Origin: Pavona decussata
Lineage: Eukaryota
Reading direction: 5' to 3'
DNA length: 64,000 bases
Assembly (NCBI GenBank): GCA_977016875.1
Contig: CDRNST010000275.1
Coordinates: 372,001 to 436,000, forward strand
The translations under genes and the position numbers were made by a program. Under the pieces are notes generated by a model that saw only the letters and a list, made by a program, of their open reading frames with translations, had not been told where the DNA came from and ran no database searches. Positions 9,834 to 59,530 of the stretch are shown here, piece by piece (positions within the stretch are counted from its first letter, which is position 1; each line of letters opens with the position of its first letter).

Positions 9834-11945
9834 ATGAAGTACGCCATTTTGCTTCTGCTGATATGCTGGTTTATCAACTCAGGGATGGCGGATCTCTGTC
9901 AGCCAGCATCTTACTCAGTGCAAGGACAGGTGCTAAAAAACCACACCATCGCAGCCGGCCCCGCAAAGCGCATAGAAACGTGTATCATGCAGTGCATGGA
10001 TCATCCTGGTTGCCATAGCAGCAACTTTTATCGCAAGGACAGAGTGTGTGAGCTGAATGACAAGACGCATGCGTATCACCCTGAAGATATGAGAGAAGAG
10101 CATTTGACGAGCTACATGGAGAATACTTTCAGGCAATTTACCTGCAGCAAAGCGGACTCCGACTGCCATCGTTGCGATGTGTAGGTATGTGTGATCACTA
10201 GGTAAATTCCCGGGGAGCCCACAGTACTACTTTATCTGAATAAACGCGTATGTTCTGAGAACGAGATGGGTATGATTGCCAAGGTCTTCTCATTTTTACA
10301 CTTAAACAACTGCAGTTTGTTTTTGAAATATGTATTTGAAGCATGCATTGCTAGTAAAACTGTTCACTTGTTTAACTGGAACGATTTTCTCTTGAGATCA
10401 ATCTTGTTTTTGTTTGTTACTTGTGAATCCGTGGAAGAAATTCCGAGCGCGTGATATGAGAATGTATAGCGTAGTGTTGTTTGTTTCTCGAAATTTTGCA
10501 CAAGAAGCAGCGTCAGTATTTATTATTTTTCCGATAGAATGCGTCATCCGCGCACTTGGAATGGAAAACAGCGACATACCAAACTCAGCCGTGACGGCTT
10601 CTTCGTCTTATTCAAATAGCCAACATGAGCCGTGGCGAGGTCGTCTCAATGATGTACCTAATAGCCGTGGTTGGGGTTACTGGGCGGCGGGAACCTCGAA
10701 TCAAAAAGAATGGCTGCAAATTGATCTTGGGAAAGAGAAGTTGCTGACAAAACTCGCCACACAGGGGAGGCCTTCCTCAGACCAGTGGGTGCGGTCATAC
10801 AAAATTCTGTTCAGTTCAGACGGAACAAGCTGGAAGGAATATAAGGAAAATGATACTGTGAAGGTAATTGTAGTGCAAGTATAAAAACGTTTGTACTATA
10901 TGAACAGAACCACAAACACATTTATAGTAATTTAAACGGATTAAATTTCATTGAAGTTAAACGAAACCAAACTTTATCCAACTCTTTTGAAGGCGATGGT
11001 TCGCGTGTCATTGGTAACCACTCAGTGTAAACGTGAAAATCAAAATTATTGGAAAATCGTTTAGTCCGAATTTCCTACGGAAAGATTTTGCAACATCGTT
11101 AGTAGCTGAGCAAAAACAATGTGTAGTTGTTTTTGGTGGCGAGTTGTTAAAACGTTCATCGACACTCACTGGCTGATGAAAATCGCCTCACAACGAGCCA
11201 ACCAAACAGTCGAGAAAAGCGCGGAAAATCGTTTCAGCACGCGGGACAGGTAGTATGGCTTTGGTGTTTTGCAAGTATCTCAAGGTTTTTTAGGTAATAA
11301 TAAGAAGGCGCAGTACGGCAAACAGACTCAAAGACCAAAGTGAATAAGACAAGTAATCGATTAAACAAGATACTACAGAATTCTCAGAAGCCAATAGCAA
11401 TGAAAGACTAGGTTGAAAAGAGAGTTAAAGTACAGTATTTGAACTCAGAACTTTAAGGTTAATGCAATCAAAGATCATGCGCGCCAATACTGTTCTTTTA
11501 GATAAAATATATGTATCTTTTTTTGTAGGGAGGCGACGTGGCAGTGGTTAGGGGCGCCGGACGTGTTATCTGGAGCGCCCAGGTTCAAGTCCCGCTCCAA
11601 GGCCACGCTTTGTATATAGCCAACTGATTTGCCTCCCACGCGATGGGATTTTTAACAAATGTTCTTTTCAGTCTGCATATTTATTTCACCGGGTTATGGT
11701 TTCCCCAATTAGCGCCGTGGCGACAAATTCTCAGTCGACACTTAAATAAAGTCATTTATTTTTTATTTATTTTTATTTTTACTTAGGTCTTTTCCGCAAA
11801 TTCAGACCGTGGAACAATCGTGTCACACATCTTAACGTCAAGGTTTATGGCCAGATATGTGCGCTTTTACGCCGTATCATGGTACAGCCACATATCCATG
11901 CGAGTTGAGCTGTATGGATGTTTCTCCAGGACCATGACTTCATGA
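9834..11945 (+). pseudogene. PAN-discoidin gene copy 1; frameshifted, predicted 116-aa secreted PAN-only product or pseudogene
   Basis: Exons 9834-10184, 10538-10863, 11787-11945. Relative to the other copies, a +3 insertion and a 22-nt deletion late in exon 1 give TAG (10182-10184) directly before the GT donor. A 1-nt insertion in exon 3 changes the C-terminus from GCSPGP* to GCFSRTMTS*. Confidence 0.85.
11528..11750 (+). mobile_element. tRNA-derived SINE in intron 2 (shared by all five copies: also ~18948, ~35043, ~45693 internally deleted, ~58395)
   Basis: Pol III box A-like TGGCAGTGGTTAGG and box B GGTTCAAGTCC, followed by a non-tRNA body and AT-rich tail, at the same intron position in each paralogue. 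Confidence 0.7.
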
Positions 11946-12545
11946 AACAAACTGTCTTCAATCTCATGTAATGAAAATGATGATTTGTAACTAACATTGT
12001 GCATGCACATTACAATAATTACATAAATATTAAGTGAGATCAGTAAAAAGAAAGTATACAACTAGGCAATATGAAGAACATCACAAGTTTTACTGATGTA
12101 GAAGGCAAATGACCATATGCAAAGGCAAACACGACGTGCGTACGTACATGAAAAGAAGAGCGACTACTACCAGAAAACCCTCTTTTGTGCCTTCGAAGAC
12201 CTTCTTGCAAAACTACGTAAAGTTATTGGGACAGGCCAACAAAACTACTTCAATCCGGCAACAAAGGACGTTCTGGAACGTTTTGTAGAGGTAGAAATCT
12301 GGATCATATGGCGTGATTGATCAACTATAAAAGTAACTTTTGTACTTGACGGAAGATTATCGCAATACTCCAGTGTAAATTTTATCACAGCCTTTGGAGG
12401 AAACAAGTCTACAGTGCTAACTATAAATATAGAAGCATGTTTGTCACACATAACTATAGAAGCAAGGGATTCACTACATTTTCTGAAGGACTGCAAAAAG
12501 ACCGGTGAGGTTGACATTGTTTTATTTACAACTACAAATTAATAA

Positions 12546-13956
12546 TGCACTAGTCAATTGAAACCCCCATCCCCCCGGACCCGGGACAGATAGGGGGATA
12601 ATAGGGGCATAACAGCACTTTTGATCAGAGATCTGTCCCCTGGGGGTGGTAGATAAGATGTGTTTTGCTTCTTTACAGTGTCCCCACCTCGGGGAATCAG
12701 GGAGATTTGACTGTGCTTGACTCAGGTACTGAAGTTCTTCGCGAAGTGAATCGACTGCACGTTGTCATTTTCGCGCCATCCATATTGGCTGATTATTGGC
12801 GAAATGCTTCGCAAAATTTGGTTTAAAGACAATTCAAAAGGAAGAAGAAAATTCATTCCAGCTCTATGCAAAACTCTGCCTACAAACCCATGGTGCAGCC
12901 ATGGGTACAAAACTGGCAGTCGCCTTTGCGGAGATTTTAAAACCGCTCATTTGGAAACGATATATAGACGACATATTTTCCCTCTGGACTTTAAGGAGAG
13001 GAGATAATGCAGTTCAGTGAGCAAGCAAACAAACACCACCCCACAATTAAATTTACGGCTGAAATTTCAGAAACGGAAACATTTCTGGATACAAACATTT
13101 ATAAAGGTGAAAGAGTTCAGAAGCAATTCAGTTCTTGATGTGCGTACGCACTTCAAACCTACTGAAACATTTCAATATACGCACTTCTCTTCGTGGCACC
13201 CACCAGGGGTAAAAAAAGGCTTCATCAAAGGCGAAGCACTGAGACTTCTCAGAACAAACTCTTCTAAAAACATATTTGAAGAGTAAATTCAAAATCCTAA
13301 ATCACGCCTACAGGAAAGAGGTTGTCCCGAGAACTTAAACTTAAAACAAATCCTCATGAAAGCCTGGCATTTAATAGAACAACAACCATGGATATGGCTC
13401 AAAGAAATCTACAAAGACCTTCCCCTCGTATGTTACACTGAGAGGGCGGTCAGTCAAAGATATACCAGTGAGAGCTAAATTACAAAAAAGGCTTAAACAC
13501 ACGCTAATCCTGGCTGCCCTATAGAGTGGTTCCATTTCGAATGCATGGGACTTGTGGATGCACCAAGTCGAAAGCGGCTTTACGCTGACTGTGCTGTTTA
13601 ACATTTTCAAAGCTACCACTACTCAGAAATGCTCTGTTGTAATGTGAAATTCACATTCTTGCAAAATTTAATAATCAACAGCAAGTTTTGTTAAGATGTA
13701 TTAAAAGAAAGCTATTGCCTTATTAAATAATATTTTGCTCCTGATTGATCCAGTGTGAACGGTTTCTTTTGTCTTGCTTTGTTTGGTTTGTGCTTTTTTT
13801 TAACCCCTTGCCAATTTATTCCCAGGGGGAGGGGAATTTGATCTCAAGATTTTCCCCAGGGGCTGGAGGTTTTGGTATGATTTGTTCAGGGCCCTTGTCA
13901 AATCCCCCTACCTGTCCCGGGTCCGAGGGGGTTGGGGGTTTCAATTGACTAGTGCA
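12546..13956. mobile_element. Non-autonomous TIR DNA element (unclassified) with nested Penelope-like fragment
   Basis: Terminal inverted repeat TGCACTAGTCAATTGAAACCCCCA ... TGGGGGTTTCAATTGACTAGTGCA, extending inward with CCCCCGGACCCGGGACAG / CTGTCCCGGGTCCGAGGGG. TSD not resolved. Confidence 0.75.
12860..13500 (+). mobile_element. Penelope-like element reverse-transcriptase fragment (decayed)
   Basis: Frameshifted pieces LQTHGAAMGTK, WKRYIDDIFSLW, HHPTIKFTAEIS, THFKPTETFQYTHFSSWHPPGVKKGFIKGEALRLLRTNSS, typical of the PLE RT/thumb region. Confidence 0.85.
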
Positions 13957-15136
13957 TAAAGCTTGTTAACAGTTACGTTGCTTTCTCACGGTACTTTGAC
14001 AGTTGCTGAACGTTTGTTTTTACTTTGTCTACAAAATCATTTGATGTACATTATGCCTTATCACTGAAATATAACATAAATGTGCGGTTGTCTTAATCAA
14101 CTGAATACTAAATCGGACCTGCATTTGTAGCTATTTTCTCTTGGAAGTTGATCGCCCTGTTTGTTTGTTTTATTTATTATTTTTTATTTTTTGCGTGTGG
14201 CGCCACAGTTCTCTTCAGAGCTTAAAAATCTCGAGATAAGAATGAACGAAGGGAGACGACAACATGCATATCGAGGATCTTCTTTTAAGTTTTAACGGTA
14301 AAATAATAGCGGAACGAAATAGCAATCTTGCGTCGTGTACACGTGTGTGGTACTGTAGATATCTGCTCGGCGCGGCGTTGAATTACATATTTCACAGCTT
14401 GAGCTACAATTCTCCGGTTTTCCACAGGTGGTAACATCATAATATTTTCGATCAAAAGGAATTGTAGCTTTGAGTACAAGACTGTTTTGATGCATCCAAG
14501 ATTTCGTAAAAGGTTTTCATTGGTAGATTTTACAATGTGCGGTTCTGTTCGAAATAGGGATGGTTGCTTCATGTTCGCTTCGTGAAAGGTCGAAATTCCA
14601 GAAAGTACACTTTACGTTTCCGTCTCTCGACAGGACACTTTTTTCGGGCCGCCTTAGCAATTTTTATACAACAAACTATAAAGAATGGGCTTTAAGACCA
14701 TACTAGTTTAAACTTCAAATTACATGTACCAGTGGGCTTTCGTTGCTGTTAAAATTAGCTAAAATTACCTTATCCGCTAAAGCGCTGCAACTAGAGTAAT
14801 TGTAACAGCCAAAAACAAGCAGTTTTCAACAGCTTTCTCAAAATAATTTAGTGATTCAGGGAGATCAAGAGATGTTTGTTATGAGTTCACCAAAGTATAT
14901 CGATAGATGTTATTACGTTGATCTGGAGAGCAAAAAGAAAATGCATTATTTTATTGTAGTTTCGACGCAGCCGGAAGCCCAAAATGGCGTTTTTCGAACT
15001 TTCTTAGATTTCGAAAAAACTAAAGCGCTTCAGGACCTTTGAATAGTATTTTCGAAAATAACTCACTACGGACTGAGGTTATTTGGGCAAAATATGAAGA
15101 AATTGAAACTTTCACGACTTATGCCGGATTCTCGAT

Positions 15137-15158
15137 AATTACAGACAGTGGCTCTTAA
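15137..15158. mobile_element. Orphan Sola3-like transposon terminus
   Basis: AATTACAGACAGTGGCTC|TTAA resembles the right end of the element at 51429-56815 (AATTACAGACGGCCACTC|TTAA). No partner end found in the window. Confidence 0.5.
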
Positions 15159-15690
15159 TAATTGATCAAAAATAAATTTTAATTTATGTTGTCACTCAAA
15201 TCAGATCAAAGCTGTTTTCTGATGTAAGTGTATGACTTTTTAGAATATTCGCAGCGTAGTCGCTTCAAACCGGAAGCAATTATTTTTGTCAATATGAAAC
15301 TAAAATATCCAATCCCCTGGCGAATTCGGCCATATTTTGAGATAACTTTAGACCAACCTGACTGCGAAGAGCAGAAGAGGTTGCTTCTTATTAATAATTG
15401 ATCAAAAATAAATTTTAATTTATGTTGTCTCTCAAATCACGGACAGAGCTGTTTTCTGATGTAAGTGAATAACTTTTTAGAATATTCGCAGCGTAGTCTC
15501 TTCAAACCGGAAGCACTTATTTTTGTCAATATTAAATTAAAATATCCAATCCCCTAGCAGATTCGGCAATATTTTAAGATAACTTTAGAACAACCTTACT
15601 GCGAAGAGCCTAAAGGGTTACTTCTTGCTATTAATAATTGATCAAAAATAGATTTTAATTTATTGTTGTCCCTCAAATTTCGGACAGATT
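15155..15690. repeat. ~235-bp tandem repeat upstream of gene copy 2
   Basis: Motif TTAATAATTGATCAAAAATA.ATTTTAATTT recurs at ~15155, ~15391, ~15632. The same family occurs at 29810-30510 and 63595-63890, with partial copies at ~38670, ~47540, ~48840. Confidence 0.85.
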
Positions 15691-16432
15691 GAATGGAACA
15701 ACTTGCTGATATTAACCATTCTTACGATCTATCGGAAGATAAGCATCGAAACTGCAAGAATACAGAGTTTTTTTTTTTATGTCTTCAACCTTCATGGTAA
15801 GAGATCCTTTTTTTTCTTTAGAGGAAAGAAACAATTCGAATAAGGACGGCTGTCGTAAGTGAAGACTTTTCTATTCTTTTGAACTTTTTAGTTTATTTCC
15901 AAAGTCGGTAAACATATCAGAGATGTTTATTTTTGGCATGGCGCTCTTTTCGCTCCACCCAAAGCGCGATTAATTTGCCGTTTATCTACAACCATTTATT
16001 ATTTAACTGCGACTTTCTTGAAACCGAAAAAGACAGCTGAGTAACGTGGAAAACTAAGACGACGGGAAAATCATTAAATGATAACGGGGCTATTTCTGCT
16101 TTTTCCCTTGCCGTAAAGTACCAAACGTGATGTTTATTCTTTCTAACATCTCTGTTTAAATAACGCACCCTTGGCAGCAAACTTTCATTCAAAACAGAAA
16201 ATCGCGCGATTTGGTGAACAGCAAAAGCAATTCAGGTATTCGTCAAGGTTTTCGGCACTTTGTCGTGAAACAAACATTGAATACTCTCATGGGTGTTTTA
16301 TCATGACATTTATTGGCAATTCGATGGAAATTTTTGACTGACAAGCGTTTAAGGTTTTTAAGACCGTGCCTAGCTGTCGGCTATATAGTCTCAGCGTAAA
16401 GGGCATCTTATATACAAGAGGAGCTGTTCTTT

Positions 16433-16685
16433 AGGCCCGTTTAAACGGTTTCAACATTCGGTTCAACATGCGTTCAACACTTTGTTGAACCAAATGTTAA
16501 GTGTGCTTGAACAGGTCGTCCATCATTGTTGAAGCTTCATTCAACATCCATACAACATTTTCTTTATTCTCAAAAATGTTGAATGGTGTTGAAGCCGTTT
16601 GAACACTCCTTTCAATATTTGTCCAACATTTGCCCAACATCCGATCAACTTTTGTTGAACGAATGTTGGTCGTTTAAACGGGCCT
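16433..16685. mobile_element. PIF/Harbinger-like MITE
   Basis: TIR AGGCCCGTTTAAACG...CGTTTAAACGGGCCT. Orthologous copy at 31233-31529 has a TTA TSD; partial copies at ~8985-9105 and ~49677-49845; empty site at ~46945. Confidence 0.75.
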
Positions 16686-17280
16686 TTAGGCTTTCAATTT
16701 AAAGCATCAGGAATTTAAATTATGAACGTTGCATGTATTTCGAGTTAAAATTTCAAGTTGGGAATGAGTCTCCTTACTCTCACTGATCCCTGAAGGCGCT
16801 GGTTGGAAACAATACCACTGAGCGCTGAAGCGGGTTCACTATTAGGGACTTAAAGGAACCGCGACGGCGACGCCAACGAAAACGTCGCTTGAAAATACAA
16901 GTTTGCGTTACTTGTCCTACTTTGCGATTATTCTAACTCCAGTTCAACTTTTACTGAGAAAGGCGTTCAAGTTGAGACAGAATGAAAAATTTGTGATATT
17001 TACTGGCGATCAAATTCGCCGCAATCGGCTTATATAATCGCCAGGTGTGTCGCCGGCTTTATGGAAGTAGCGTAGCGCGAGGTTAAATTATAAATGGTTA
17101 AAGCAAATTTTTCTTTCTAACGGAGAGAAAATAGTAAAAAAAAAAAATGCTGGAGGAGGAAAGGGGAAGAAAAAAGGCAAAGGAAAAAGCAAGAGCAATT
17201 TTCAAAAGTGAAAATATTGTGCATATTAATCTCCCTGTTGCCAAGAAGTTAACACAATCCTTGTTTCCCTTCCAGCCGGA

Positions 17281-19998
17281 ATGAAGTACGCCATTTTGCT
17301 TCTGCTGATATGCTGGTTTATCAACTCAGGGATGGCGGATCCCTGTAAGTCAGCGTCTAACTCAGTGCAAGGACAGGTGCTTAAAAACCACACCATCACG
17401 GCCGGCCCTGCAGAGTGCATAGAAGAGTGTATCATGCAGTGCATGGATCATACTGGTTGCCACAGCAGCAACTTTTATCGAAAGGACAGAGTGTGTGAGC
17501 TGAATGACAAGACGCATTCGTCTCACCCTGAAGATATGAGAGACGAGCATTTCACTAACTACATGGAAAATACTATCAGACCATTCACCTGCAGCAAAGA
17601 CTCCGATTGTGGAAGTAGTTTGCTTTGCCTGCCATCGTTGAGGTGTGGAGGTAAGTGTGATCACTAAATACTAAATTCCTGGGGAGCTGAGCCCACAGTT
17701 TGCTTTATAGTCAGCGCCCTTACTACTACTTTACATGAATAAACGCGTACGAACGAGATGGCTCTGATTGTCAAGGTCTTCTCAGTTTTAATTCTTAATC
17801 GAAGCATGCATTGCTAGTAAAATTGTTCACTTGTTTAACTTGAACGATTTTCTACTGAGATCAATCTCGTTTTTGTACGTTACTTGTGAATCTGTAGAAG
17901 AAACTCCGAACGCGTGATGAGAATGTAGCGTCAGTTTTTGTTGCTTTTCGGATAGAATGCATCATCCGCGCACTTGGAATGGAAAACAACGACATACCAG
18001 ACTCAGCCGTAACGGCTTCTTCGTCGGCGTCAGGTGTCCGGCATGGGTCTTGGCGAGGTCGTCTCAATAATGTACTAACTAGCAATAGTTGGGGTTGCTG
18101 GGCGGCGGGAACCAATAATCAAGGAGAATGGCTGCAAATTGATCTTGGGAAAGAGAAGTTGCTGACAAAACTCGCCACACAGGGGAGGCCTTCCCTTGAC
18201 CAGTGGGTGCGGTCATACAAAATTCTGTTCTGTTCAGACGGAGCAAGCTGGAAGGAATATAAGGAAAATGGCGCAGTGAAGGTAAATGTAGCGCAAGTAT
18301 AAAAAAGATTGTTCTATATGAAAAGGACCACAAACACATTTAAAGTAATTGAACGGATTAAATTTTACTGAAATCAAACAAAACCAAACTTTATCCAACT
18401 CTTTTGAAGGCTATGGTTGGCGTGTTATTGGTAACCACTGTAAACATGAAAATAAAAATTATTGAAAATCGTTTAAAACTATCAACTTGTTTAGTCCGAA
18501 TTTTCAATGGAAAGTTATGCAACATCGTTATCAGCTGAGCAAAACCACTGTGTAGTAGTATTTGGTGGAGAGTTGTTAAATGTTTACTGACACTCAGTGG
18601 CTGATGACAATGACCTCACAACGATCCAACCAAAACAGTCGAGAAACGCGCGGGAAATCGTTTCAACACACGAGCCAGGTAGTATGGCTTTGGTGTTTTG
18701 CAAGTGTCTCAAGGTTTTTTAGGCAATAATAAGTACAGCGCAGTTCAGCAAACGAGACTCAAAGACTCAAAGTGAATAACAAAAGTAATCAATTAAACAA
18801 GATACTACAGATTTCTCAGAAGCCAATAGCAATGAAAGACTAGGTTGAAAAGGAGTTAAAGTACAATATTTGAACTCAGAACTTTAAGGTTAATAAAATC
18901 GAAAATCATACTGTTATTTCAAATCATATTTATGTATCTCTTTTTGTAGGGAGGGGACGTGGTCAGTAGTTAGGGTCGCCGGACTTGTAATCTGGAGCCC
19001 CCAGGCTGAAGTCCAACTCCAAAGCCACGCTTTGTATATAGCCAACTGATTTCCTTCTCACCCGTTGGGATTTTTAACAAATGTCATTTTCAGTTTACAT
19101 ATTTTGTTTCACGGGTTTATAGTGTCCCCATGCAATTAGCGCCACAGCGCCAAATACTCAGTCGACACTTAAGGTGGCTCTATATAATTTCTTCAGTTTT
19201 CGCTGGTAGTGATATATATATTTTTCTTGATGTTCTGATTCTTTCAGCCCTGTGAAAATATCAGGTTTCAAACATAGTTTCGAGTACCTAAGTCCTTATG
19301 CTTTGCTAAACACACCGTTACAACTGGTAAATCCCGTTTCCATGGCAACGAGCGGATGATACATCTGTAGATTCCTCCACTCCTAGAAAGTTTCAAAACG
19401 GGTTTGACCGAATTTCGTTCGGTAAAATTTCGCTATTTTTTTTTGTAAAAAAGAGAGAAACTCCAAAGTATCTCCTCATAAAGTCAAAACAAATTCTGTA
19501 CATACGTTTGGCCAATTTCTGCAATTTTCGTTTTTACCATTTATTGCAGTTGTGCATATATGATTCTCCGGCCTTAAGATTTTTTGGAGTACAAATACAG
19601 GCTAAATTCTATCATTGAGCCAATTTTTAGAAAAATTCACCATGGAAAACACTTTAAAATAGGCTTTTTTTTCAGGCTAAAACTGGCCTTGTTTCGCGCG
19701 CCAGGATAATGAAAATTCATGTATCAGTTGGAAAACTGCACGCGCTCGCGCCATTTTAGTACCCAGTTGCCGCGCGCCAAAAAACTGTATAGAGTCACCT
19801 TAAATGAAAAAAATGTATTTATTTATGTTTAGTTTTACTTTTACTTAGGTCTTTTCCGGAAGTTCAGACCGTGGAACAATCGTTTCACACATCTTAACGT
19901 CAAGGTTTATGGCCAGATATGTGCGCTTTTACGTCGTATCATGGTACAACCACATATCCATGCGAGTTGAGCTGTACGGATGTTCTCCAGGACCATAA
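17281..19998 (+). CDS. Secreted PAN/Apple + Cys-rich + F5/8 type C (discoidin) domain protein, copy 2 (281 aa)
   Basis: Exons 17281-17650 (370 nt, phase 1), 17956-18281 (326 nt), 19849-19998 (150 nt, TAA), all GT-AG. Signal peptide MKYAILLLLICWFINSG; PAN motif ECIMQCMDHTGCHSSNF..VCELN; discoidin motifs ALGMEN..IPD..TASS, WLQIDLG, ATQGR, SYKI, ARYVRF, MRVELYGC. An acceptor 5 nt before the ATG implies an upstream non-coding exon. Confidence 0.92.
19173..19799. mobile_element. Kolobok-like non-autonomous DNA transposon in intron 2 of copy 2
   Basis: TTAA TSD (19169-19172, 19800-19803); TIR GGTGGCTCTATATA / TGTATAGAGTCACC (purine-purine start); empty TTAA site in the other paralogues (GTCGACACTTAAATAAAG). 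Confidence 0.8.
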
Positions 19999-21017: not shown

Positions 21018-21373
21018 GGGCTGGCTTACACGCGCGATAAGCATAAACACAAGGTGATATAAACAGGCGCGGTGAATTAAACGTTTGGCGCCAAAAATTT
21101 AAAATTCAAGATGGCGGACGCCAAGGAGGTATTCAGCGACGAGACCAAGATGTTTTTACTTCTTCTTCTCTTGTGCTTAAGCTTGTGTTATCCCGGTTTA
21201 CACGGGCGACCTTACGACATAGTAGCAAGTACAAGAGAAAGGAAAGATTTACTTTTTTTGGCGCTTGCGTTTATGCTTTCGCTTATGCTTGCGTCGTCCC
21301 TGTTTACATGTTGGTTTCTTGGGCTTATGCTTGGGCTTATGGTTATGCTTAGGTCGTACATGTAAACCAGTCT
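21018..21373. mobile_element. Old Harbinger-like MITE downstream of gene copies (also ~36886-37232, ~60104-60455)
   Basis: TAA flanks; imperfect TIR GGGCTGGCTTACAC / TGTAAACCAGTCT; internal ATAAGC/GCTTAT repeats. Confidence 0.6.
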
Positions 21374-21924: not shown

Positions 21925-22295
21925 GATTGACTGACTGACTGACTGGCTCACTGGCTAACTGACTGACTTACTGACTGACTAACTACTGTCTGGCTGGGTG
22001 TCTTACTGACAGATAAGCGGACCTGTTGGATGACTGACTGACTGACTGACTTACTGATCATGACTGGCTGACTGGCTGGCTGGCCGGCCGACTGACTGGA
22101 CCGATTGTCTGACTGACTGATTGACTGACTGATTGACTGACTGACTGACTGACTGACTGACTGACTGACTGACTGACCGACTGACTAGCTGGCTGACTGA
22201 CTGACAGGCTGGCTGGATGGCCGGCTGACTGACTGACTGACTAATTGACTGACTGACTGGACTGATTGTCTCACTGACTGACTGACTGACTGGCT
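21925..22295. repeat. Imperfect (ACTG)n/(GCTG)n microsatellite
   Basis: Long GACT/GGCT tetranucleotide run; orthologous runs at ~37703-37878 and ~61060-61412. Confidence 0.95.
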
Positions 22296-49859: not shown

Positions 49860-50558
49860 CCAGGTGGGTACATTAAAAATTATTTGGAAATACAAATAAA
49901 ATTACACTGGTGGATTAAAAGCGGTCTGAAATTATTTACAATAAAAATGTTCCCGACGTTTCGGTCGCAATCACGGACCTTCTTCAGGGGAAGTGAAAGA
50001 AAAATTATCCAGAAGCACAGTTATAAACAAGACGCTGATTAAAATTCAGGATATGTGTCATTTTTTCTTGTTAGCGAGAGTCAAGTGTAAATACTCCTTG
50101 GGGAGTAACGCCCCGTCGGCTCGATTGAGTGGGTCTTTGGCGCAATTAATCTCCCAGGCCTCGAGAATCTTTCTTTGGTGCCAATTATTGCTAGTCCTGA
50201 GAATTGTGGCCTCATCCCACGCGATTTCGTGATTTGTTTTTATCACGTGGTCTGCAAGCGCTGATTTTTCGCCTTGTCGTCGTGAGACAACCTTTTGGTG
50301 TTCGCTTTTTCTTGTTATGAATTTTCTCTGCGTTTCGCCAACGTAACTCTTGCCGCAATTAGCACATGGAATGTCGTAAACGGGATCACGAGTATCTTCT
50401 TTATCCATTTGATACAACCTCCCTTGCAGAATCTGTACGGGGGTATAGCACAATTCCATACGTTAGCGGGACCTCTGAGCCAATTAAGAGAGTTCTGGAA
50501 AACCATGGCATCAAAGTGGCATTTAAACCCTATCAGACAATTAGCAAGATGTTTCCAA
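49860..50558 (-). mobile_element. Penelope-like element 3' part (GIY-YIG endonuclease) with inverted 5' segment
   Basis: Minus strand: VYDIPCANCGKSYVGETQRKFITRKSEH..SALADH..H..RKILEAWEI..LNR. Plus strand from ~50420: IPYVSGTSEPIKRVLENHGIKVAFKPYQTISKMFP, the linker that normally precedes the endonuclease. Confidence 0.9.
49950..49992 (-). ncRNA. Minimal type I hammerhead ribozyme
   Basis: Minus strand UUCCC-CUGAAGA-A-GGUC-CGUGAUUGC-GACC-GAAAC-GUC-GGGAA: CUGANGA and GAAA cores, 5-bp stem I, 4-bp stem II, GUC cleavage triplet; located just 3' of a PLE ORF. Confidence 0.85.
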
Positions 50559-50689
50559 NNNNNNNNNNNNNNNNNNNNNNNNNNNNNNNNNNNNNNNNNN
50601 NNNNNNNNNNNNNNNNNNNNNNNNNNNNNNNNNNNNNNNNNNNNNNNNNNNNNNNNNNNNNNNNNNNNNNNNNNNNNNNNNNNNNNNNN
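50559..50689. other. Assembly gap (131 N)
   Basis: Run of N. Confidence 1.
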
Positions 50690-51428
50690 GTTCAAGTTGA
50701 GACAGAATGGGAAATTTACTGTCATATATTCACGTTCTCCACAAAACCTTGAATTTGGTCTTTTCAAGTTGTTGTTTGGCTGTTTACGGCGAAGAAATGC
50801 ACAAAATTTATAACGCAAGTGCAAAGCCTTTGCTTTTCTCATTAAATCCTATTGTTTTGTGGCGTTCTCGTTGCCGTCGCCGTAATAGCTTCTTAAACTC
50901 CCTTGTTAGCCTCCAACTTCGTCGTTTTTTAAAAGGGTAAGATCACACTACAAGCCTAAGTGGGCCACGCGGCCGGAGCTTAGCCCGGTTTCTGTAGCAT
51001 GAAGCAACTAGACTGAGTATTGCTTTAGTTTTGTTTTCGGCAGAGTCTTGGATAAATATCTTTAAGGAGTAGCGTAGCGCGAGGTTAAATAATAAATGGC
51101 TGGAGCAAATTTTTCTTAATTGTTAACGGAGAGAAAATAGTAAATAGAGAGGGAAAGGAGAGCAAAAAATGAGAAGAAAAAAAGGGCAAAGAAAAGTAAA
51201 AGGTTTTTTCCTTTGTTTTCAAAAGTGGAAATGTCATGCATATTTTTATTCCGGGCAGTTCTGTATTAATCCTGCATTCGCCAAGAAGTTAACGCATCAG
51301 TTCCTTGTTTCCTTTCCAGCCGGAATGAAGTACGCCATTGTGCATCTGCTGATATGCTGGTTTCCCAGCTCAGCCGTGGCCGGTCTCTATAAGCCAGCAT
51401 CTTACTCAGTACAAGATCAGGTGCTTAA

Positions 51429-54400
51429 GAGTGGCCGTCTGTAATTTTCGACTAATGTGTTTTGGGTAAGAAAAAATAAAATTCCTCAAACTTTCTCAAA
51501 ACAAAGGACTAGGTAAGTGATTTACATTGATATAACTTTTGGGTGAATCAAATAAATATTTTAGCTGTAGGACGAATAATTTGGTTTTTCAGCTCTCTGA
51601 AGGCACTCAGGGATCATTTTACTACAGATCGTAAACATCTGGGTCTGGAAATAAAGCGTAACTAAAACTAAACGCCAAGTTGGAACTCGAAATCAGAAGA
51701 CATTTATGATTCATTCAGGACGGTTATTTCCAATTTTAATAAAAAGCTGAATATTTTATCGATTTTTTAACTTGTCTCTTTTGTGAGCCATTTCGGCAGT
51801 TACAAAAATCGGCTAAATTCAAATGAAAATATCGCCAATGGTACATTACTAGACTTCATAAAAGTACACCCCAGTTAAAGAGCAACGTCATTCCTTCAAA
51901 TATATGGAATAAAATTTTGGGGCCAGCGTACCTACGAAATTTGACAGTTGAAATTACAAAGTGCACTTTCGTAAACAAACACTAAATTTTCAAATAGCTC
52001 AACGACGACGAGTCAATGACATACGGAGGAAAACAATCTAAAATCCCCTCGTGTCATGAAATACCTGGAGTGAATAAAATATTTTGCTTCCTGTTATAGT
52101 TTTTGTGAATCAAAAACATATTTTCGATGAATCATTCGCGAATTTTGAAAGAAACAAGACAAGTTTTCAAAAAGTATCGTTTAATTGTCACACCACCTGT
52201 TCAAAAGATAAGCAAATTCCGAGCTTCAAAAACAATCTAAATCGATAAATTATTTGACTTCTATTCCATACGTGGGCCAAAGGCTATCTACAAGAAACGT
52301 ACCTTTACAGTGGAGTGTACTTTTGAGGCCAGATGGTGAGGATCTGTGAAACGCACGTAACTGAGTCTCGCAAAAATTTACGAACTTTCAACAAGTTGGA
52401 TTGCGTGACATAAGCACAGAAACTTGTCCGCCCACCTGTCCGTCCATCGATGATCAAGTAATTTCGCGTTCAGTTTGGCAACGTTTACTGAAGGGGTTGA
52501 GAGGTATTAAAGTTAGTCAAAAGTGAGCTTTTGTTTATTTTCTCGTGACAATCATTGGCCCCTATATAACGCAATTGCTACTTAATACAGGTCATGACGA
52601 CACGCGGTTACTCAACCTTCGTCGGTGGAACATGTAGTTTTAGTGCAGCAAATCCTGCAGTGGTGAGGAGTATAGCGCTAGAGAGTTGTTTCAAGGACAG
52701 AAAAGTACGTCTAAAATCACGCGACGTCCGCGATGCTTCCTTGTAAAATGAGGCGCAGTTAATGTTATATACTCGGATTACTCCTAGCTAGAGCAGGTAA
52801 TCAACTGAACCAGAGTAGTAATGCAATAATAACAAATTTATAGTTTGAAGTTACACTATTCCTATCCTTAATTAAGAAAACGTTTACAAATCTGCTTGAT
52901 AAAAAGGACAATTCCAACATAATACCTGGTCAAGATTAAAACTAGCCCGCTATTTGAGTTGCGCTATGTTACTTCTCACGTAGAACTCCCATCCCCTCCG
53001 GGGGAGGGGTAAAGGGTAAGGTGGGGGATGAGGAGGGTCTGTGGTTTCATCGTCTTAGGTGTGGAAAAGTTCAACCAGGCGAGCAGGAGAAGTGAACACA
53101 AACTTCTGGAGAGGAATCGAAAAAACAACCAAAGTAGGAACTTTTTGGTCCCATGCGTTCTCCGTGCATTCCCTCGCAAGCCTTCCCCGGTCTCGGAAAG
53201 GACACGACTGCTACGTAGGCAACGAATTTCAGGGTAAAATGATTTATGTTTAATGGGTACTTTTATATTGTAAGGGTAATGCCGTAAAGATTCATTTTTC
53301 TGATTTTTAAACTACTATGACGTCAATAAATTCCAAAATGATGGGGCGCGCGGAAAGTTTAAAAGCAAAAGTCGTTTCCCTTCCAAGGGAGTAGGAGAAA
53401 TGAACGAAAAATTTCTGGAGACTGAAGGGGAAAAACAACCGAGGTAGGCACTTTTTGGTCCCCTAAGCACTCCATACATTAACTCGCTACCCTCCCCCGC
53501 GAGCCTTCCCCGCTCGTTCATCAACTTTGTTGACGGATATCTCTTTTAGCAGCTGTGCAATATCCGAGGTTAAGGAAAGCTCCACTAAGTAGAATTAGAG
53601 AAGAACAACGATTCCCACGATGAAGACGATCAACCAACAAAGCTCTTCACTTGCCCGGTTGACGGATGTGTAAAACTTTTTCCAGCGTTACAGCTCTTTA
53701 GAGAACCATTTTCAGTACGGTAATATAAATGCGAAATTGTCCTCGAAAGGAAGAACTTATTTGACAAGGCCAGAATCGCCTAGAGAGACAAACTTCTCAG
53801 CTAGTGGCAAGATCCACGCTTCGAGGCCGTGCTGAAGAGTTTCAAACACAAGGCTGGGCACGATAAAGAAGCCTGAACGTTTCACTGAAACTGTAAGAAT
53901 GCTACCTCAGGGGCGTAGCCAGGATTTCTAGGGGGTGGGGGGGGGGGGGGGGGTCCCAAATTGGTTCCAACGAAAACGGTTGGTCTAAAATCCTTACATT
54001 ACGTACGTACAAGACTTTGGCGTTTACGCTACGCAAACAGAAGACGCCTTGGTTGCCCGTTGAGTGAACATGCTTATCACTTCCTTGATATTTATGTCTC
54101 GGTGGTAATTGATGTTCATCAACGCCAGCCCAGACTCTCGCTCGCTTGACATGGTCGACCTCAGGTATGTTTTTAACCTTCTTAGTGTACTGAATGAGCG
54201 CTCACATTCAGTTGACGTTATCGGCAACGTGCACAAAATGCACTCCTTTGACTTCTTGGATGGCGGGCCTGTTTCCTCTGCTTGTTCGACGCTTCCTCTT
54301 TCGCTGCTTTGTCGTCGTTTTGTCTCTTCGGTTCTGGGATTGGAATTTCATCAATATAATCGATGTTAGGGCCGGAAAAATGTCTTGACTCGAATTTCTT

Positions 54401-56815
54401 ACGCATTATCAGTAAATGTTTCGCTGTGCCTACCTTTTTGGTGAAAAGAATGCATCGATCTTTTGCAATCGGGACATTGTTACGAAAGCCACCAGCTCGC
54501 ACAACACCAATGGATCGTCTACTAATTTCGCGGGAATTTCTGCTGTGCACACACGCGCATCTTGTTACACGGGAATCGCAGCTCTGCTCATGTCTCCGAA
54601 AATGCAAGTGAAACGCAAGTAGGTACCACAATGACGTTCACTGTACTTTGTAAGCATAGAACAAAACGAAGAATTTCAGGAATCGAGAGTCCATTATACT
54701 CTTGCTGGGATAAAATCACTGTTAAAAATAGGAGAGGAGGGGTTTCGGAGCCCCTGGAACGCTCCCTTTGGCTACACCCCTGTACCTTGATGAAAAGTTT
54801 CCCATTGGCCAGGAAACCGGCCATAAGCTTCATGCAGCAGCCGTGGCATGTGACATAAGGTTTGCTAAGGACAAAGGCGGAAATAGAAGGTTTACAGTAG
54901 ATGATTTCCTCACACCTCAACAAGTCCAATCTTTATTTTTGCAGAGCGGCTGCTAAGCTAAAGAACAGCCAAGAAGACACCCCTGAAGAAGACATTATTG
55001 CCGCTGAGGGCGGGCGAAGCTGCTTATTTACTAACTCGCCAAACTATTCTTGACCAGTGTCTGTTATCCCATCCAGTCACTTTCGAATCATTTAACCTCT
55101 GTAACTTAAATGCGTCGAATGGATTCAAAGAGCTTAGCATCGTCATGCTCCACAAAATGTGTGAATCTTGACTTTGATTTAATAGATGTCACCCATTTCT
55201 CAACGGCACGTAAGGCACCTTACATCGAATTGCAAAGGTGTCTTGTGGATGAGTGCAGCTGTGCACTTTACCAAAAATTATTGCAAAATTTTTGCATAAG
55301 TCTTGTAACAAAACGGTATATAACAGTTAGCATTTGATGTATTTTCACGTCTTCCATGCCTTCGAGTTGTACTTTACTTCCTTTCGTGGATATTACGTAG
55401 AGAGATGTAGACTTGTTGGCGGAATGTAGGAACCGGAACTAGAATATCTCTTCTAGGCTGTCATTAGACAACAAAGGCGTTTCAGAATTTTTGTCATGAC
55501 TCAGACCCCCTTCTAAGAAACTTACTACATGTGCTACCAGTCTCCTGTAAAGAAAACAAGCAAGGCGGTGCTGCCAATAGAGTTAGTAAAATCCAGCTGA
55601 AGCCGGACTGCACCCAGACTGAAAATCGGCGATAAATTAACGCAGGTTAGGGGAAACATAGAATGTTCAGTTTCTGCAATGGGCGCTTGATTGCTTTCTT
55701 GTTTAGCTAAGTAGTCTGTATCCGATATCCTCTCATTTGATATCGCATCAAATGAAAAAACGTTTTCTCTAAAACTGATATCAGATAATCATTTGCGCGG
55801 CTCGGCACTCAGGTCTTCCCGACCCGAGTGATCTGGGGACGACAATGTGTATGTAACGCAATCTTTTTCGCCTTGATCAGGAGATCTCTCGCTGCTTCAT
55901 GCACCACAGAAAAGATACTTCTATTGTCGGAAAGGGAACATTAGCTTGACGACCTCAGTTGTTGTAAGGATCTCGAGAGTCGTTGGATCTTTCGAATACC
56001 GTAAAACATTCAGTTTTTCCGTGACGAACAGCGGGAGTTACAGTCAAAGAATGGTCAAATCGAGTCAAAGTTTGTCGAAGACTGTATAAACTTCACCACA
56101 AATTCCGCGAAAACATGTTTCCATTCCGCCATCCCACTGGGAAGGTAACTGAAAGCATTCCTTTTTCTCCAAGTCAGAGTATCTTAAGCACGTTAGTGGA
56201 TTTTGTAATGTTTTTCCTTCGTATTTCATTGACTCGTCGTTGTTGAGCTAATTAAAGATTGCGTTTGTTTACAAAAGTGCACTTTGTAATTTCAACTGTC
56301 AAATTTCGTAGGTACGTTGGCCCCAAAATTTTATTCCATATATTTGAAGGGAAGACGTTGCTCTTTAACTGGGGTGTACTTTTATGAAGTCTAGTAATGT
56401 ACCATTAGCGATATTTTCATTTGAATTTAGCCGATTTTTGTAACTGCCGAAATGGCTTACAAAAGAGACAAGTTAAAAAATTGATAAAATATTCAGCTTT
56501 TTATTAAAATTGGAAAATAACCGTCCTGAATTAATCATAAATGTCTTCTGATTTCGAGTTCCAACTTGGCGTTTAGTTTTAGTTACGTTTTATTTCCAGA
56601 CCCAGATGTTTACGATCTGTAGTGAAATGATCCCTGAGTGCCTTCCGAGAGCTGAAAAACCGAAATATTTGTCCTGCAGCTAAAATATTTATTTGATTGA
56701 CCTGAAAGTTACATGAATGTGAATTACTTATCTAGACCTTTCTTCTGAGAAAGTTTGAGGAATTTTATTTTTTCTCACCCAAAACACATTAGTTGAAAAT
56801 TACAGACGGCCACTC
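51429..56815 (+). mobile_element. Sola3-like DNA transposon (internally deleted/decayed), ~600-bp TIRs
   Basis: TTAA TSD (51425-51428, 56816-56819); GAG...CTC termini; TIRs ~51429-52035 and ~56210-56815. Relic coding pieces at ~52594-52800 and ~53620-54960 (LFTCPVDGCVK..LENH; YLDEKF.IGQETGHK..RRFTVDDFLTPQQVQS). TTAA plus GAG plus very long TIRs matches the Sola3 description. Confidence 0.85.
53908..54782 (-). mobile_element. Non-autonomous hAT element (5-bp TSD) nested in the Sola3-like element
   Basis: TIR CAGGGGCGTAGCC / GGCTACACCCCTG; TSD TACCT (53903-53907, 54783-54787); minus-strand hAT dimerisation-domain relic TLPITSTECERSFSTLRRLKTYLRSTMSSER. Confidence 0.88.
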
Positions 56816-59530
56816 TTAAAAATCACACCATCATGGCTGGCCCCGCAGAGCGAATAGTAGAGTGTGTTATGCAGTGCATAGATCATCCTGGTTGCCATAG
56901 CAGCAACTTTTATCACAAGGACAGAGTGTGTGAGCTGAATGACAAGACACATGCGTCTCACCCTGAAGATATGAGAGAAGAGTATTTCACTATCTACATG
57001 GAAAACACTTTCAGACCATTCACCTGCTGTAAAGACTCCGACTGTGGCAGTAATTTGCTTTGCATGCCATCGATGAGTTGTGAAGGTAGGTGCAATCTTC
57101 AAATACCCGCATTCCTGGGGAGCTGAGCCCACAGTTTGCTTTAGAACAAACGCGTTTATACTGAAAGAATTGCAGCTTGTTTTTTAATATGCCTTTGAAG
57201 CATGCGTTGCTAGTAAAATTGTTCACTTGTTTAACTTGAACGATTCTGTCCTGAGATCAATCTCGTTTTTGTACGTTACTTGTGAATCTGTAGAAGGAAC
57301 TCCGAGCGTGTGACATGAGAATGTAGTGCAATTTGTTTCTCGGAATTTTGCACAACAAACAGCGTCCATTTGTTATTTTTTCGATAGAATGCGTCGTCCG
57401 CGCACTTGGAATGGAAAACAATGACATACCAGACTCAGCTGTAACGGCTTCATCGTCTTGGTCAGATAGCCAGCATGAGCCGTGGCGAGGTCGTCTCAAT
57501 AATGTACCTAATGACGATGGCTGGGGTTGCTGGATTGCGGGAGCCTCGAATCAAGGAGAATGGCTGCAAATTGATCTTGGAAAGGAGAAGCTGCTGACAA
57601 AACTCGCCACACAGGGAAGGCCTTCCTTTGACCATTGGGTGCGGTCATACAAAATTCTGTTCAGTTTAGACGGAACTAACTGGAAGGAATATAAGGAAAA
57701 TGGTGTTGTGAAGGTAACTGTGGTGCAAATTTATAAAAACGCTTGTACTATATAAACAGGACCACAAACACATTTAAAATAATTAAACAACCAAATTTGA
57801 CTGAAGTCTACCAAAACCAAACTTTATCCGACTCTTTTGAACGCGATGGTTGGCGCGTTATTGGGAAACATTGTAAACGTGAAAAATCAAAACTACTAAA
57901 AATCGTTTAAAGAAATCGACTTGTTTAGTCAGAATTTCCAACGGAAAAAGTTTTGCAACATCGTTATCGGCTGAGCAAAACCACAATAAAGTTTTATCTG
58001 GTAGGAAGTTGTTAAACGCATGTTAGATGACTCTCAGTGGCTGATGACAATGACCTCAAAACGAACCAACTAAAACAGTCGAGGAGCGCGGGAAATCGTT
58101 TCAGCACGCGGGACAGGTAGTACGGCTTTGGTGTTTTGCAACTGTCTCTAGATTTTAAAGGCAATAATTAGAGAGCGCAGTACAGCAAACAAGACTCAAA
58201 GGCGTAAAGTGAATAACACAAGTATTTTCGTTTAACAAGATAGTACTTAATTCTCAGAAGGCAATAGCAACGGCAGACTAGTAAGAAAAGGGAATTAACG
58301 CACAAGATTGGAATTCAGAACTTTAAGGTTTATACAATCAAAGATAATGCGCTCATACTTTTATTTCAAATAAAATTTATGTATCTCTTTTTGTAGGGAG
58401 CCGACGTGAAAGAAGTTAGCGGCGCGGGACGTGTAATCTTGAGCCCCCAGGCTAAAGTCCAGCTCCAATTTAGAGCCAAGCTTTGTATATAGGCAACTGA
58501 TATGCCTCCCACCCGTTGGGATATTTAACAAATGTTTTTCTCAGTTTGCATATTTATTTTTTACCGCGTTATAGTGTCCCTAATTAAGGCCACAGCGCCA
58601 AATACACAAGCAAAACTTAAATAAAACTTCTTATATTTATATATAATATATATATTTATATTTTTACTCAGGTCTTTTCCGGAAATTCAGACCGTGGAAC
58701 AATCGTGTCACACTTCTTAACGTCAAGGTTTACGGCCAGATATGTGCGCTTTTACGTGGTATCGTGGTACAAGTACATATGCATGCGAGTTGAGCTGTAC
58801 GGATGCTCTCCAGGACCATAAGTTAATGTAAAAAACTATTTTCAATCTCAAGTAATGGAAATGAGGATTGTCATTAAAATTGTGCATGCGCATCAATAGT
58901 TAACATCAATATTATGGGAGATCAGTAAAAAGAAGTTAGACAGCAAGGTAATATGTTGAACAGCATAAGTTTTACTGATGTAGAAAGCAAATGACCATAT
59001 GCAAAGGGAACACGAGGTGCGTACGTACATAAAACGAAGAGCAACTATTACTAGGAAACCCTCTTCAATTTCATGCCTTCGAAGACCTTCTTTCAAAACG
59101 ACGTGAGTCTTAACACATACCGACAGAATGACTTCAGGATTTATTTATTTTAACTGAAACATGTTGCGGTGAGTAATGAGACTGAATTAAGGTTCTACAA
59201 TATTCCTGTGAACTACACGACCGAAGCCCTCTGCAGGTTAACGTCTATCTACCATATAGGTAAGTTGCGCTGTTGAAGCACAGCCGAAGCTGGCATGTTG
59301 CTGATTGGTCATTTCCAGCAAATTCTTTTCCAGCGTCTCTTCTCTTCTCGCTCCCTGGGAAGTGAAGAGGAAAGAGCCTGGGACCGAGGTTGCATCTCTA
59401 GAAGTGCTCTTCCCAGAATTAGCATATTTTGAAAATAGGAAGAGAGAAAATTTATTTGTTTTGTCGCACATTACAGATTTTATCAAGAACTGGATCATTA
59501 TACTGACTGCCAATCCAGGAATTTAACTCG

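Follow-up and report, generated by a model that had tools for sequence, protein, structure and literature searches.

Diversified lectin-like recognition families of invertebrates include the FREPs of snails, the VCBPs of amphioxus, and millectin and tachylectin-2 of corals. To our knowledge, corals have no adaptive immunity, and they must distinguish symbionts, commensals and pathogens; the candidates usually proposed for such discrimination are expanded families of secreted binding proteins whose contact loops have diversified. The family examined here, from Pavona decussata, resembles those families in being a lineage-specific tandem expansion of secreted, putative binding proteins that vary at the predicted ligand-contact surface. 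However, its fold and domain pair are different, and the signs of selection on it are suggestive.

Proteins combining a PAN domain with an F5/8C (discoidin) domain are present across Hexacorallia, where they have been automatically named "lactadherin-like". The earlier note had not recognised a characterised gene of this architecture, but RefSeq holds PAN+F5/8C proteins called lactadherin or lactadherin-like from Montipora (XP_068731339), Porites lutea, Actinia tenebrosa (XP_031553890) and Nematostella (XP_001630952). These share the signal-PAN-linker-discoidin order, a length of 269-293 aa, the cysteine pattern and 50-58% identity in exon 2 with the P. decussata proteins, but are automatic annotations without functional work. 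Full-length cDNA-type relatives, P0009 and P0033, were found in other corals. In the literature on coral and cnidarian lactadherin, discoidin and PAN-domain proteins, no paper on the PAN-discoidin architecture was found; "lactadherin" genes have been described as coral-diversified (PMC6208414), and the remaining related literature consists of general lists of candidate receptors.

The characterised proteins closest to the discoidin part are the C2 domains of coagulation factors V and VIII (FV, FVIII) and of lactadherin (MFG-E8), which share the discoidin fold, the closing Cys pair and 38-40% identity over ~157 aligned columns, and whose membrane-binding spikes coincide with the variable positions of the coral proteins. 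Unlike these, the coral protein (~281 aa) has a single discoidin domain rather than two, with a PAN/Apple domain as its N-terminal partner, lacks EGF and A domains as well as RGD, and belongs to a multi-copy tandem array in which the loops are diversified. Retinoschisin (RS1) is also small and secreted, with a short N-terminal module preceding its one discoidin domain (sequence match E=9e-11), but it carries an RS1 domain in place of PAN, forms octamers, and is the product of a single-copy vertebrate gene without loop diversification. In the engineered FVIII discoidin "Discobody" (PDB 4pt6), the spike loops were, according to the entry title, rewritable to antibody-like specificities on a fixed scaffold; that variation is man-made, whereas the coral loop variation is natural.

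Organisation of the locus

The window, a stretch of 64,000 nucleotides of the P. decussata genome (assembly GCA_977016875.1, contig CDRNST010000275.1, positions 372,001 to 436,000 of the forward strand; coordinates below are window positions), includes five three-exon genes, all on the + strand, each encoding a PAN/Apple domain and a single F5/8C discoidin domain behind a signal peptide (Table 1). They extend from the ATG of copy 1 at 9834 to the stop codon of copy 5 at 58821. In all five, exon 1, which ends in phase 1, encodes the signal peptide, PAN and a Cys-rich linker; discoidin codons 1-108 are contained in exon 2, which ends in phase 0; and exon 3 encodes the remainder of the discoidin domain. 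The introns are of the GT..AG type.

Table 1. Features of the PAN-discoidin genes in the window
Feature	Position	Strand	Remarks
Copy 1 exon 1	9834..10184	+	Signal peptide and PAN; broken
Copy 1 exon 2	10538..10863	+	Discoidin codons 1-108; own frame open
Copy 1 exon 3	11787..11945	+	1-bp insertion near 3' end alters final residues and shifts stop
Copy 2 exon 1	17281..17650	+	Intact; signal peptide, PAN, Cys-rich linker
Copy 2 exon 2	17956..18281	+	Discoidin, spikes 1-3
Copy 2 exon 3	19849..19998	+	C-terminal discoidin part, loop 4, stop
Copy 3 exon 1	32258..32627	+	Intact; splice to exon 2 present in run contig
Copy 3 exon 2	34056..34381	+	
Copy 3 exon 3	35275..35424	+	Exons 2 and 3 joined in one contig
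Copy 4 exon 1	44040..44409	+	Intact
Copy 4 exon 2	44705..45030	+	Bears type A spike 1-2 cassette
Copy 4 exon 3	45859..46008	+	
Assembly gap (N)	50559..50689		Intergenic, between copies 4 and 5
Copy 5 exon 1, first part	51325..51428	+	Signal peptide, PAN start; ends at TTAA target site
Insertion in copy 5 exon 1	51429..56815		5,387 bp
Copy 5 exon 1, second part	56820..57085	+	Open frame once insertion omitted
Copy 5 exon 2	57388..57713	+	
Copy 5 exon 3	58672..58821	+	

The common exon structure claimed for five paralogues in the earlier note was thus present, but among these five copies only copies 2-4 encode intact 281-aa products. Copy 1 has lost a net 19 bp from exon 1, which causes a frameshift, with TAG as the final codon of the exon. 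Copy 5, which also lacks the first PAN cysteine, is split by an insertion with 21-bp terminal inverted repeats and a TTAA target duplication (51425-51428 and 56816-56819). The insertion is a TTAA transposon; a search for a transposase found no ORF of 140 aa or more within it.

The assembly gap is located 4.5 kb past the stop codon of copy 4 and 636 bp ahead of the ATG of copy 5, and is crossed by no exon or reading frame. The sequences flanking it align, with order and orientation kept, with unbroken intergenic DNA that precedes two paralogues located beyond the window, and the scaffold join therefore looks right.

The earlier note had made its proposal depend on expression of copies 2-4, of which one copy was examined. 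Two RNA-type runs belonging to two studies yielded spliced contigs which show that copy 3 or its near-twin is expressed, the reads not separating copy 3 from this 97%-identical gene. The splice joint 32627>34056, with GT..AG ends, was present in a run contig, and one contig bridges exons 2 and 3.

The array and its turnover

The full family comprises 14 copies across ~170 kb at a single locus, with 5 of the 14 inside the window. Close PAN exons were found at this locus only, and two genes upstream in the array have the PAN exon of the family joined, in identical splice phase, to a WSC exon. WSC is a putative carbohydrate-binding domain. A single-locus array of 14 copies with two types of spike cassette and PAN-WSC sister genes is described for this genome only.

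Birth-and-death evolution, as the earlier note had suggested, is borne out by the four broken copies, by duplication of a 34-kb block and by copy content that varies among assemblies, and recombination among copies was detected (PHI p<=0.001). Turnover would involve unequal crossing-over, segmental duplication and gene conversion, with copies being lost via frameshift or transposon insertion.

The number of copies could in principle reflect uncollapsed haplotypes or misjoined scaffolds, as the 34-kb block occurs twice with 97.3-97.7% identity and a scaffold gap lies ~2 kb beyond one of its copies. Such an artefact is highly improbable as an account of the array. Between the two copies of the block, which differ by a frameshift and in intron size and neither of which adjoins the gap, lie 68 kb and three other genes, and an array of 172 kb or more is present in an independent assembly. 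A haplotig origin of the five window copies was rejected, as their mutual identity of 70-91% in exon 2 is well past allelic divergence. Part of the duplication of the 34-kb block might stem from assembly. The array is considered to be a genuine birth-and-death, loop-diversified family with a putative function.

Domain architecture and fold

A Pfam profile search conducted exon by exon matched PAN_1 (PF00024) at 35-41 bits (gathering cut-off 21.4 bits) and F5_F8_type_C (PF00754) at 66-70 bits with exon 2 alone (gathering cut-off 28.2 bits), in agreement with the domains assigned in the earlier note. Exon 3 spans positions 86-127 of the F5_F8_type_C profile. Discoidin residues C1 and C153 are kept in 14 of 14 copies and are predicted to form a disulphide that closes the discoidin barrel, and the PAN cysteines are invariant among the anthozoan relatives. 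The fold was assessed with an AF2 model of the coral relative P0009 (pLDDT 78.9; exon-2 part ~65-75% identical), which stood in for the window proteins and superposed on the C2 domains of FVIII, FV and lactadherin with TM scores of 0.89-0.93 and rmsd of 1.3-1.9 A.

The family falls outside lactadherin/MFG-E8, since the profile search matched no EGF domain in any exon, the RGD tripeptide is absent from the translated copies, and each gene encodes one discoidin domain instead of the two in tandem (C1 and C2) of lactadherin. Despite the single discoidin domain, it is also not retinoschisin-like by definition, as the N-terminal module is PAN_1 and not an RS1 domain.

Variable positions in the discoidin domain

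All of the peptide motifs that the earlier note had quoted were present on the + strand at their five places. Across the 14 copies, columns with 4-6 different residues are discoidin positions 24-31, 38-56, 80, 106, 137 and 142, of which 106 and 137 have no assigned place relative to the spikes. The clustering of variable positions is not due to chance.

The proposal that the variable clusters correspond to the FV/FVIII C2 spikes held on alignment with the structural references, which include PDB 3hnb (identified by its entry title). Y24/S25 align with the Trp-Trp tip of FV, position 80 aligns with the Leu of the FV spike-3 loop KSLSSE, and W140-Y141-H142 align with W2313-V2314-H2315 of FVIII. 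Most residues at the spike tips are aromatic or hydrophobic (Y/W/A at position 24; Y/F/L/M/H/S at position 80), and the W140-Y141 loop is conserved among copies. Differences between copies are mainly in spikes 1-3 and the W-Y-x loop, at the predicted ligand-contact end of the discoidin barrel.

The spike 1-2 cassette

Codons 22-57 exist in two types, A and B, between which dS is 0.80 compared with 0.16-0.23 elsewhere in the gene. The type A cassette of copy 4 (~44770-44915) has 92-94% identity with a distant type-A copy, compared with 74-86% for type-B copies. Spikes 1-2 are therefore encoded by an old cassette within a homogenised backbone. As the synonymous divergence of the cassette exceeds that of the flanking sequence by a factor of 4-5, something must shield it from homogenisation. 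A mutational hot spot in the loops was considered as the cause of the raised synonymous rate, which was mostly explained by the deep A/B cassette instead. Within type B only, dN/dS for codons 22-57 is 1.55 compared with 0.3-0.7 elsewhere.

Tests for selection on the loops

Codon models were run with a custom implementation using partly fixed branch lengths, not with PAML or HyPhy. A model with separate omega values for loops and scaffold was far better than one with a single omega (2dlnL=53), and with a free rate for the loops the values were 1.15 and 0.48, respectively (p=0.0014), confirming the predicted excess of non-synonymous change in the loops. Across analyses, omega was ~1.1-1.4 for the loops and ~0.45-0.5 elsewhere. 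The PAN exon, used as an internal control, had an omega of 0.40 and gave no positive-selection signal.

Site models after recombination screening, as the earlier note had proposed, gave a divided answer. The single-tree result was set aside because of the recombination detected with PHI, and three segment trees were used instead. With these, M2a and M8 favoured positive selection (p=3e-6 to 5e-7) and picked sites 49, 53, 80, 106 and 142. However, when codon rates were gamma-distributed, M2a against M1a gave p=0.30 with 14 sequences, 0.29 with 18 and 0.058 within type B, and for the loops treated as a block with their own rate, omega=1 was not rejected. As the signal of the standard tests is lost once codon rates vary, positive selection on the loops, with omega above 1, is regarded as suggestive, and neutral drift in unconstrained loops is possible.

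Interpretation and alternatives

The reading preferred here, with a probability of roughly 55%, is that the locus holds a single tandem family of secreted, soluble ~281-aa proteins that undergo birth-and-death turnover and in which putative binding loops have been diversified on a shared scaffold. The array is compatible with a diversifying recognition family, in which both adaptive selection and function are putative. The backbone of the gene would be kept similar while the loops at the predicted ligand-contact end vary among copies, and two old versions of spikes 1-2 would persist in an otherwise homogenised gene. Each paralogue may thereby present a different binding surface on the common scaffold, with PAN as a second, constant module for binding or oligomerising, and the paralogues together would recognise various extracellular glycans or lipids, for example on microbial, symbiont or dying-cell surfaces. 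An immune, symbiont or opsonin role for the family is putative.

The loops may instead be neutral, the family being a young and partly redundant expansion in which the loops are unconstrained (omega ~1) and the paralogues do one job with no adaptive diversification. The loss of significance with codon-rate variation and a loop omega indistinguishable from 1 are what this account expects, the scaffold omega of 0.45-0.5 is itself relaxed, and 4 of the 14 copies are decaying. It is nonetheless a possibility with the odds against it, as every discoidin domain that has been characterised uses the spike loops as its functional surface, where freedom to vary does not equate to absence of functional constraint. 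In addition, dN exceeds dS in the type B spikes 1-2, M2a and M8 were strongly positive even on segment trees, and the deep synonymous divergence of the cassette needs protection from homogenisation. Alternatively, all copies might bind one ligand, such as phosphatidylserine-rich membranes or matrix, via hydrophobic spike tips, and serve in dying-cell clearance or adhesion with loop changes that tune affinity only. The best sequence and fold matches are indeed membrane-binding C2 domains, the tips are mostly aromatic or hydrophobic and the conserved W140-Y141 loop aligns with the membrane-binding W2313 segment of FVIII. However, there is no EGF/RGD module for bridging to integrins, the tips alternate between hydrophobic and polar residues among copies, and the WSC domain of the sister genes points to carbohydrate over lipid, making a single lactadherin-like ligand unlikely.

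In a nematocyst proteome from a myxozoan (PMC8684318), "lactadherin-like" FA58C proteins were listed as candidates for venom-like compounds, and venom families are often fast-evolving tandem arrays, so that the coral proteins could be secreted into prey or predators with loops that diversify against their targets. This is very improbable, as the myxozoan protein has 671 aa and another architecture, and nothing ties the coral PAN-discoidin family to nematocytes.

An extension of the preferred reading, of loop diversification in a birth-and-death family, is put forward tentatively, and is on balance doubtful. The spike 1-2 segment may act as an MHC-type binding-site cassette in a concertedly evolving array, with two ancient versions, type A shared with other coral genera and type B with an extra loop cysteine. 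Gene conversion would homogenise the rest of the gene, and the loops would be under diversifying selection in the expanded type-B lineage. Together with the PAN-WSC sisters, the array would then form a modular, exon-shuffled recognition system in which a constant PAN exon is combined with interchangeable, diversified modules for putative glycan or lipid binding.

The locus is a compact and tractable case, as the product has 281 aa and a well-understood fold, the variable positions are on known ligand-binding spikes, and natural cassette variants and sister genes with a swapped putative binding module are at hand. If binding differs among the paralogues, they would constitute a new class of recognition molecules in corals, and engineered discoidin binders would have a natural counterpart in them; if it is the same, the array would be an ordinary young tandem expansion, mislabelled lactadherin by database names. 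Loops that vary on a conserved scaffold were likewise observed in other coral species.

Gene structure, predicted products and expression

The motifs quoted in the earlier note were all found on the + strand at five places in the window, and the exon structure said to be common to the five paralogues was recovered as a single gene model using unit alignment and a search for exon boundaries (see table). Pfam assigned exon 1 to PAN_1, and exons 2 and 3 to F5_F8_type_C. The reading frames of copies 2, 3 and 4 are uninterrupted, and each encodes a product of 281 aa. As the N-terminus of the products is a hydrophobic leader, and inspection of the sequences revealed neither a second hydrophobic segment nor a C-terminal anchor signal, they are predicted to be soluble, secreted proteins. 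In the AF2 model of a relative, residues 1-26 have pLDDT <50.

Contigs of four runs were aligned to copy 3 only, and contigs covering its exons were found in two of the four (same organism, different studies). One contig per run omits an intron as modelled, with one joining 32627 to 34056 (GT..AG ends) and the other bridging 34383 to 35280. As these contigs are 95-99% identical to the window, their source may be copy 3, its 97%-identical twin or alleles. The same exon joins are present in full-length ORFs on 1.35-kb contigs of other corals (relatives P0009 and P0033) and in RefSeq models. The family is at least partly expressed.

Features of the PAN-discoidin array and its surroundings (C275, contig CDRNST010000275.1)
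Feature	Coordinates	Size	Strand	Description
Exon 1		370 bp	+	ATG to GT donor, phase 1
Exon 2		326 bp	+	AG acceptor to GT donor, phase 0
Exon 3		150 bp	+	Terminates in TAA
Insertion in copy 5 exon 1	window 51429-56815	5,387 bp		After codon 35; perfect 21-bp terminal inverted repeats, TTAA target-site duplication
N run	window 50559-50689			Intergenic, between copies 4 and 5; 636 bp upstream of copy 5 ATG
Segmental duplication	C275:318342-353483 vs 386860-420614 (window 14860-48614)	34 kb		97.3-97.7% identity, 68 kb apart
PAN-WSC genes (two; loci L050, L031)	C275:284098-286200 and C275:292714-294930			Signal and PAN exon, then one WSC-domain exon

Variation in the ligand-contact loops

Variation in the family is focused on the ligand-contact loops of the discoidin domain. 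In a 14-copy alignment, columns with 4-6 different residues were found at discoidin positions 24-31, 38-56, 80, 106, 137 and 142. Sequence alignment to solved structures placed positions 24/25 at the Trp-Trp tip of factor V (FV) C2 in spike 1, positions 37-50 in spike 2, and position 80 at the Leu of the FV 'KSLSSE' spike-3 loop. W140-Y141-H142 aligned with W2313-V2314-H2315 of FVIII, where the W2313 segment is called membrane-binding in the title of PDB entry 3hnb. Alignment to the FV and FVIII C2 domains thus bears out the proposal that the variable clusters correspond to F5/8C spike loops. The AF2 model of P0009 superposes on the C2 domains of FVIII, FV and lactadherin (TM 0.89-0.93), and in exon-2 ORFs of other coral species the loops vary in both sequence and length and the scaffold is nearly fixed.

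Selection and recombination

Codon models were fitted using the author's own GY94-type code, which gave an overall omega of 0.69 for the discoidin part. Recombination was detectable (PHI p<=0.001 overall, 0.03 for exon 2 and 0.05 for exon 3), and site models were therefore run with separate trees for three segments. With these trees, the M7/M8 comparison suggested in the earlier note was strongly positive (2dlnL=29.2), as were M8 vs M8a (2dlnL=25.5) and M2a vs M1a (2dlnL=25.5, p=2.9e-6), with ~8% of sites having omega near 4 and the top posterior at positions 53, 80, 106, 49 and 142. However, the significance of M2a vs M1a was lost when gamma codon rates were included (p=0.30 for 14 sequences and p=0.29 for 18 sequences).

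When loops were set by homology (positions 23-31, 37-56, 76-83 and 139-144), omega was 1.42 for the loops vs 0.45 for the scaffold (2dlnL=53 vs a single omega). The predicted excess of non-synonymous change in loops over scaffold persisted when the loops were allowed their own rate (omega 1.15 vs 0.48, p=0.0014), in which case loop omega did not differ significantly from 1. Pairwise counts were in agreement (loops dN 0.275, dS 0.286; scaffold dN 0.068, dS 0.157), and the divergence of flanking non-coding sequence was ~0.17-0.21. The PAN exon, used as a control, had an omega of 0.40 and gave no selection signal (p=0.56), showing that the code does not call selection everywhere. Overall, positive selection on the loops is suggestive but not robust.

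A distinct spike 1-2 segment in copy 4

In a sliding-window comparison, the identity of copy 4 with every other copy was 85-97% across the introns and most of the exons, but it dipped at window 44700-44899 to 74-86% with most copies vs 92-94% with a distant array member. Two versions of the spike 1-2 segment were distinguished. Type A was found in four copies, and the same type is present in Montipora, Porites and P0009. All other copies carry type B, which has an additional, odd cysteine at discoidin position 47 in spike 2 (window 34194-34196 in copy 3), a position at which C, S, G and Y all occur when copies or assemblies are compared. Cys47 is presumably unpaired, and might lead to disulphide-linked oligomers or be an additional variable contact residue.

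Between types A and B, dS was 0.80 and dN 0.44 in codons 22-57, vs a dS of 0.16-0.23 in the remainder of the domain and a K of 0.28 in non-coding flanks. As the divergence is deep in this segment and shallow in its flanks, much of the apparently fast synonymous rate in the loops reflects an old cassette within a homogenised backbone. Within type B, dN in codons 22-57 was 0.224 and dS 0.145, a ratio of 1.55, with ratios of 0.30-0.70 elsewhere. The site test on type B only (13 sequences) gave p=6e-6 when codon rates were held uniform but p=0.058 when they could vary, and it picked out positions 24, 28, 49, 53, 80, 96, 106, 126, 137 and 142. The case for diversifying selection within this young expansion is therefore borderline.

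Relatives and PAN-WSC sister genes

Among named proteins, the best matches come from two stony corals, Porites and Montipora, and the sequencing runs in which the sequence occurs carry coral or coral metagenome labels. The order PAN_1, then F5_F8_type_C, recurs in proteins of 269-293 aa from Montipora, Porites, Actinia and Nematostella, which share an invariant cysteine framework and have automatic names of 'lactadherin(-like)' or 'EDIL3'. Identity with lactadherin was rejected, as the array family lacks an EGF domain and RGD and has a single discoidin domain, whereas lactadherin has two. A literature search found no paper on the PAN-discoidin family; lactadherin-like genes are listed, without further treatment, among coral-diversified genes by Cunning et al. 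2018 (PMC6208414). The architecture had not been recognised as that of a characterised gene, which holds in that no study was found, but the domain pair is already in databases under a misleading name. The array adds a further case to the secreted binding proteins that have expanded, and diversified in their loops, in invertebrates.

The PAN exons of two PAN-WSC genes on the same contig are 89-90% identical to exon 1 of copy 3. An ORF with a WSC match lies ~1.5 kb downstream of each, scoring 28.2 bits in one gene and 26.0 bits in the other (cut-off 27.8). Each ORF is preceded by an AG acceptor whose phase, 1, matches that of the PAN exon, and is terminated by a stop, predicting a join to the PAN exon. 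This looks like shuffling of WSC and discoidin exons within one locus, in which one unvarying leader-PAN exon would then be paired with different binding modules. Such pairing modestly favours a lectin-like role, and a role in immunity or symbiosis may be envisaged.

Broken copies

Copy 1 has lost a net 19 bp from the Cys-rich linker. This loss shifts the frame and makes TAG the final codon of exon 1, which terminates in phase 0 where exon 2 requires phase 1. There is also a 1-bp insertion close to the stop. Use of a weak cryptic donor (GTTGCG) could bring exon 1 back into phase at the cost of linker cysteines, and copy 1 is a probable pseudogene.

Exon 1 of copy 5 is interrupted by an insertion with a TTAA duplication, as would be made by a piggyBac-type element. 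As an ORF scan found no ORF >=140 aa within it, the element is probably non-autonomous. The exon is open once the insertion is removed in silico, pointing to a recent event. Copy 5 also has Tyr in place of the first PAN cysteine. No exon or reading frame spans the N run upstream of this copy, and a scaffold join there is plausible because both gap flanks align, with order and orientation kept, to continuous DNA upstream of two paralogues beyond the window.

Array size and turnover

A six-frame search of the entire 602-Mb assembly for exon 2 identified 14 close copies (70-100% identity), all on the + strand of C275 between 302 and 469 kb, and PAN exons >=74% identical were found at this locus only. 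More distant discoidin exons (<=50% identity) number hundreds elsewhere in the assembly (740 first-look candidates). Further discoidin exons were seen on contigs C250, C233, C56 and C78, and those on C250 include strictly periodic runs, spaced 1.1-1.2 kb, with the look of arrays or of giant genes encoding many discoidin domains. When flanking DNA was added and all 14 copies were modelled, 10 were intact. The four broken ones are copies 1 and 5, a third disrupted by a 4-bp insertion, and a fourth whose leader T-run is one T too long, which could be an assembly error.

The duplicated 34-kb block contains three array genes (copies 2-4) and a retroelement between them, and one duplicate gene later gained a 4-bp frameshift. 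This block might conceivably be a haplotype-duplication artefact. For the five copies in the window, the same explanation was rejected, as their exon 2 sequences differ by 9-30%. The array also extends over at least 172 kb in two independent public assemblies, in which some of the copies have near-identical counterparts and several further copies, absent here, are present. Loci L044-L048, in public assemblies ERZ25073805, ERZ25073751 and ERZ26692669, come from this coral or one very close to it. For near-identical pairs between assemblies, at least three differences lie in spikes 1-2 (C47G, N26K, Q28L) and at least one in the scaffold. The 14 copies, four of them broken, the 34-kb duplication and the copy content differing between assemblies all fit the birth-and-death family envisaged in the earlier note.

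Long open frames were also present between array genes at window 25300-29450 and 41270-43220. By eye, the first resembles an LTR-type element encoding reverse transcriptase plus integrase, and the second a reverse transcriptase of the non-LTR class that carries a YADD motif. In another assembly, locus L047 has a retroelement beside an array gene, with precomputed matches to RVT_1, RNase H and rve.
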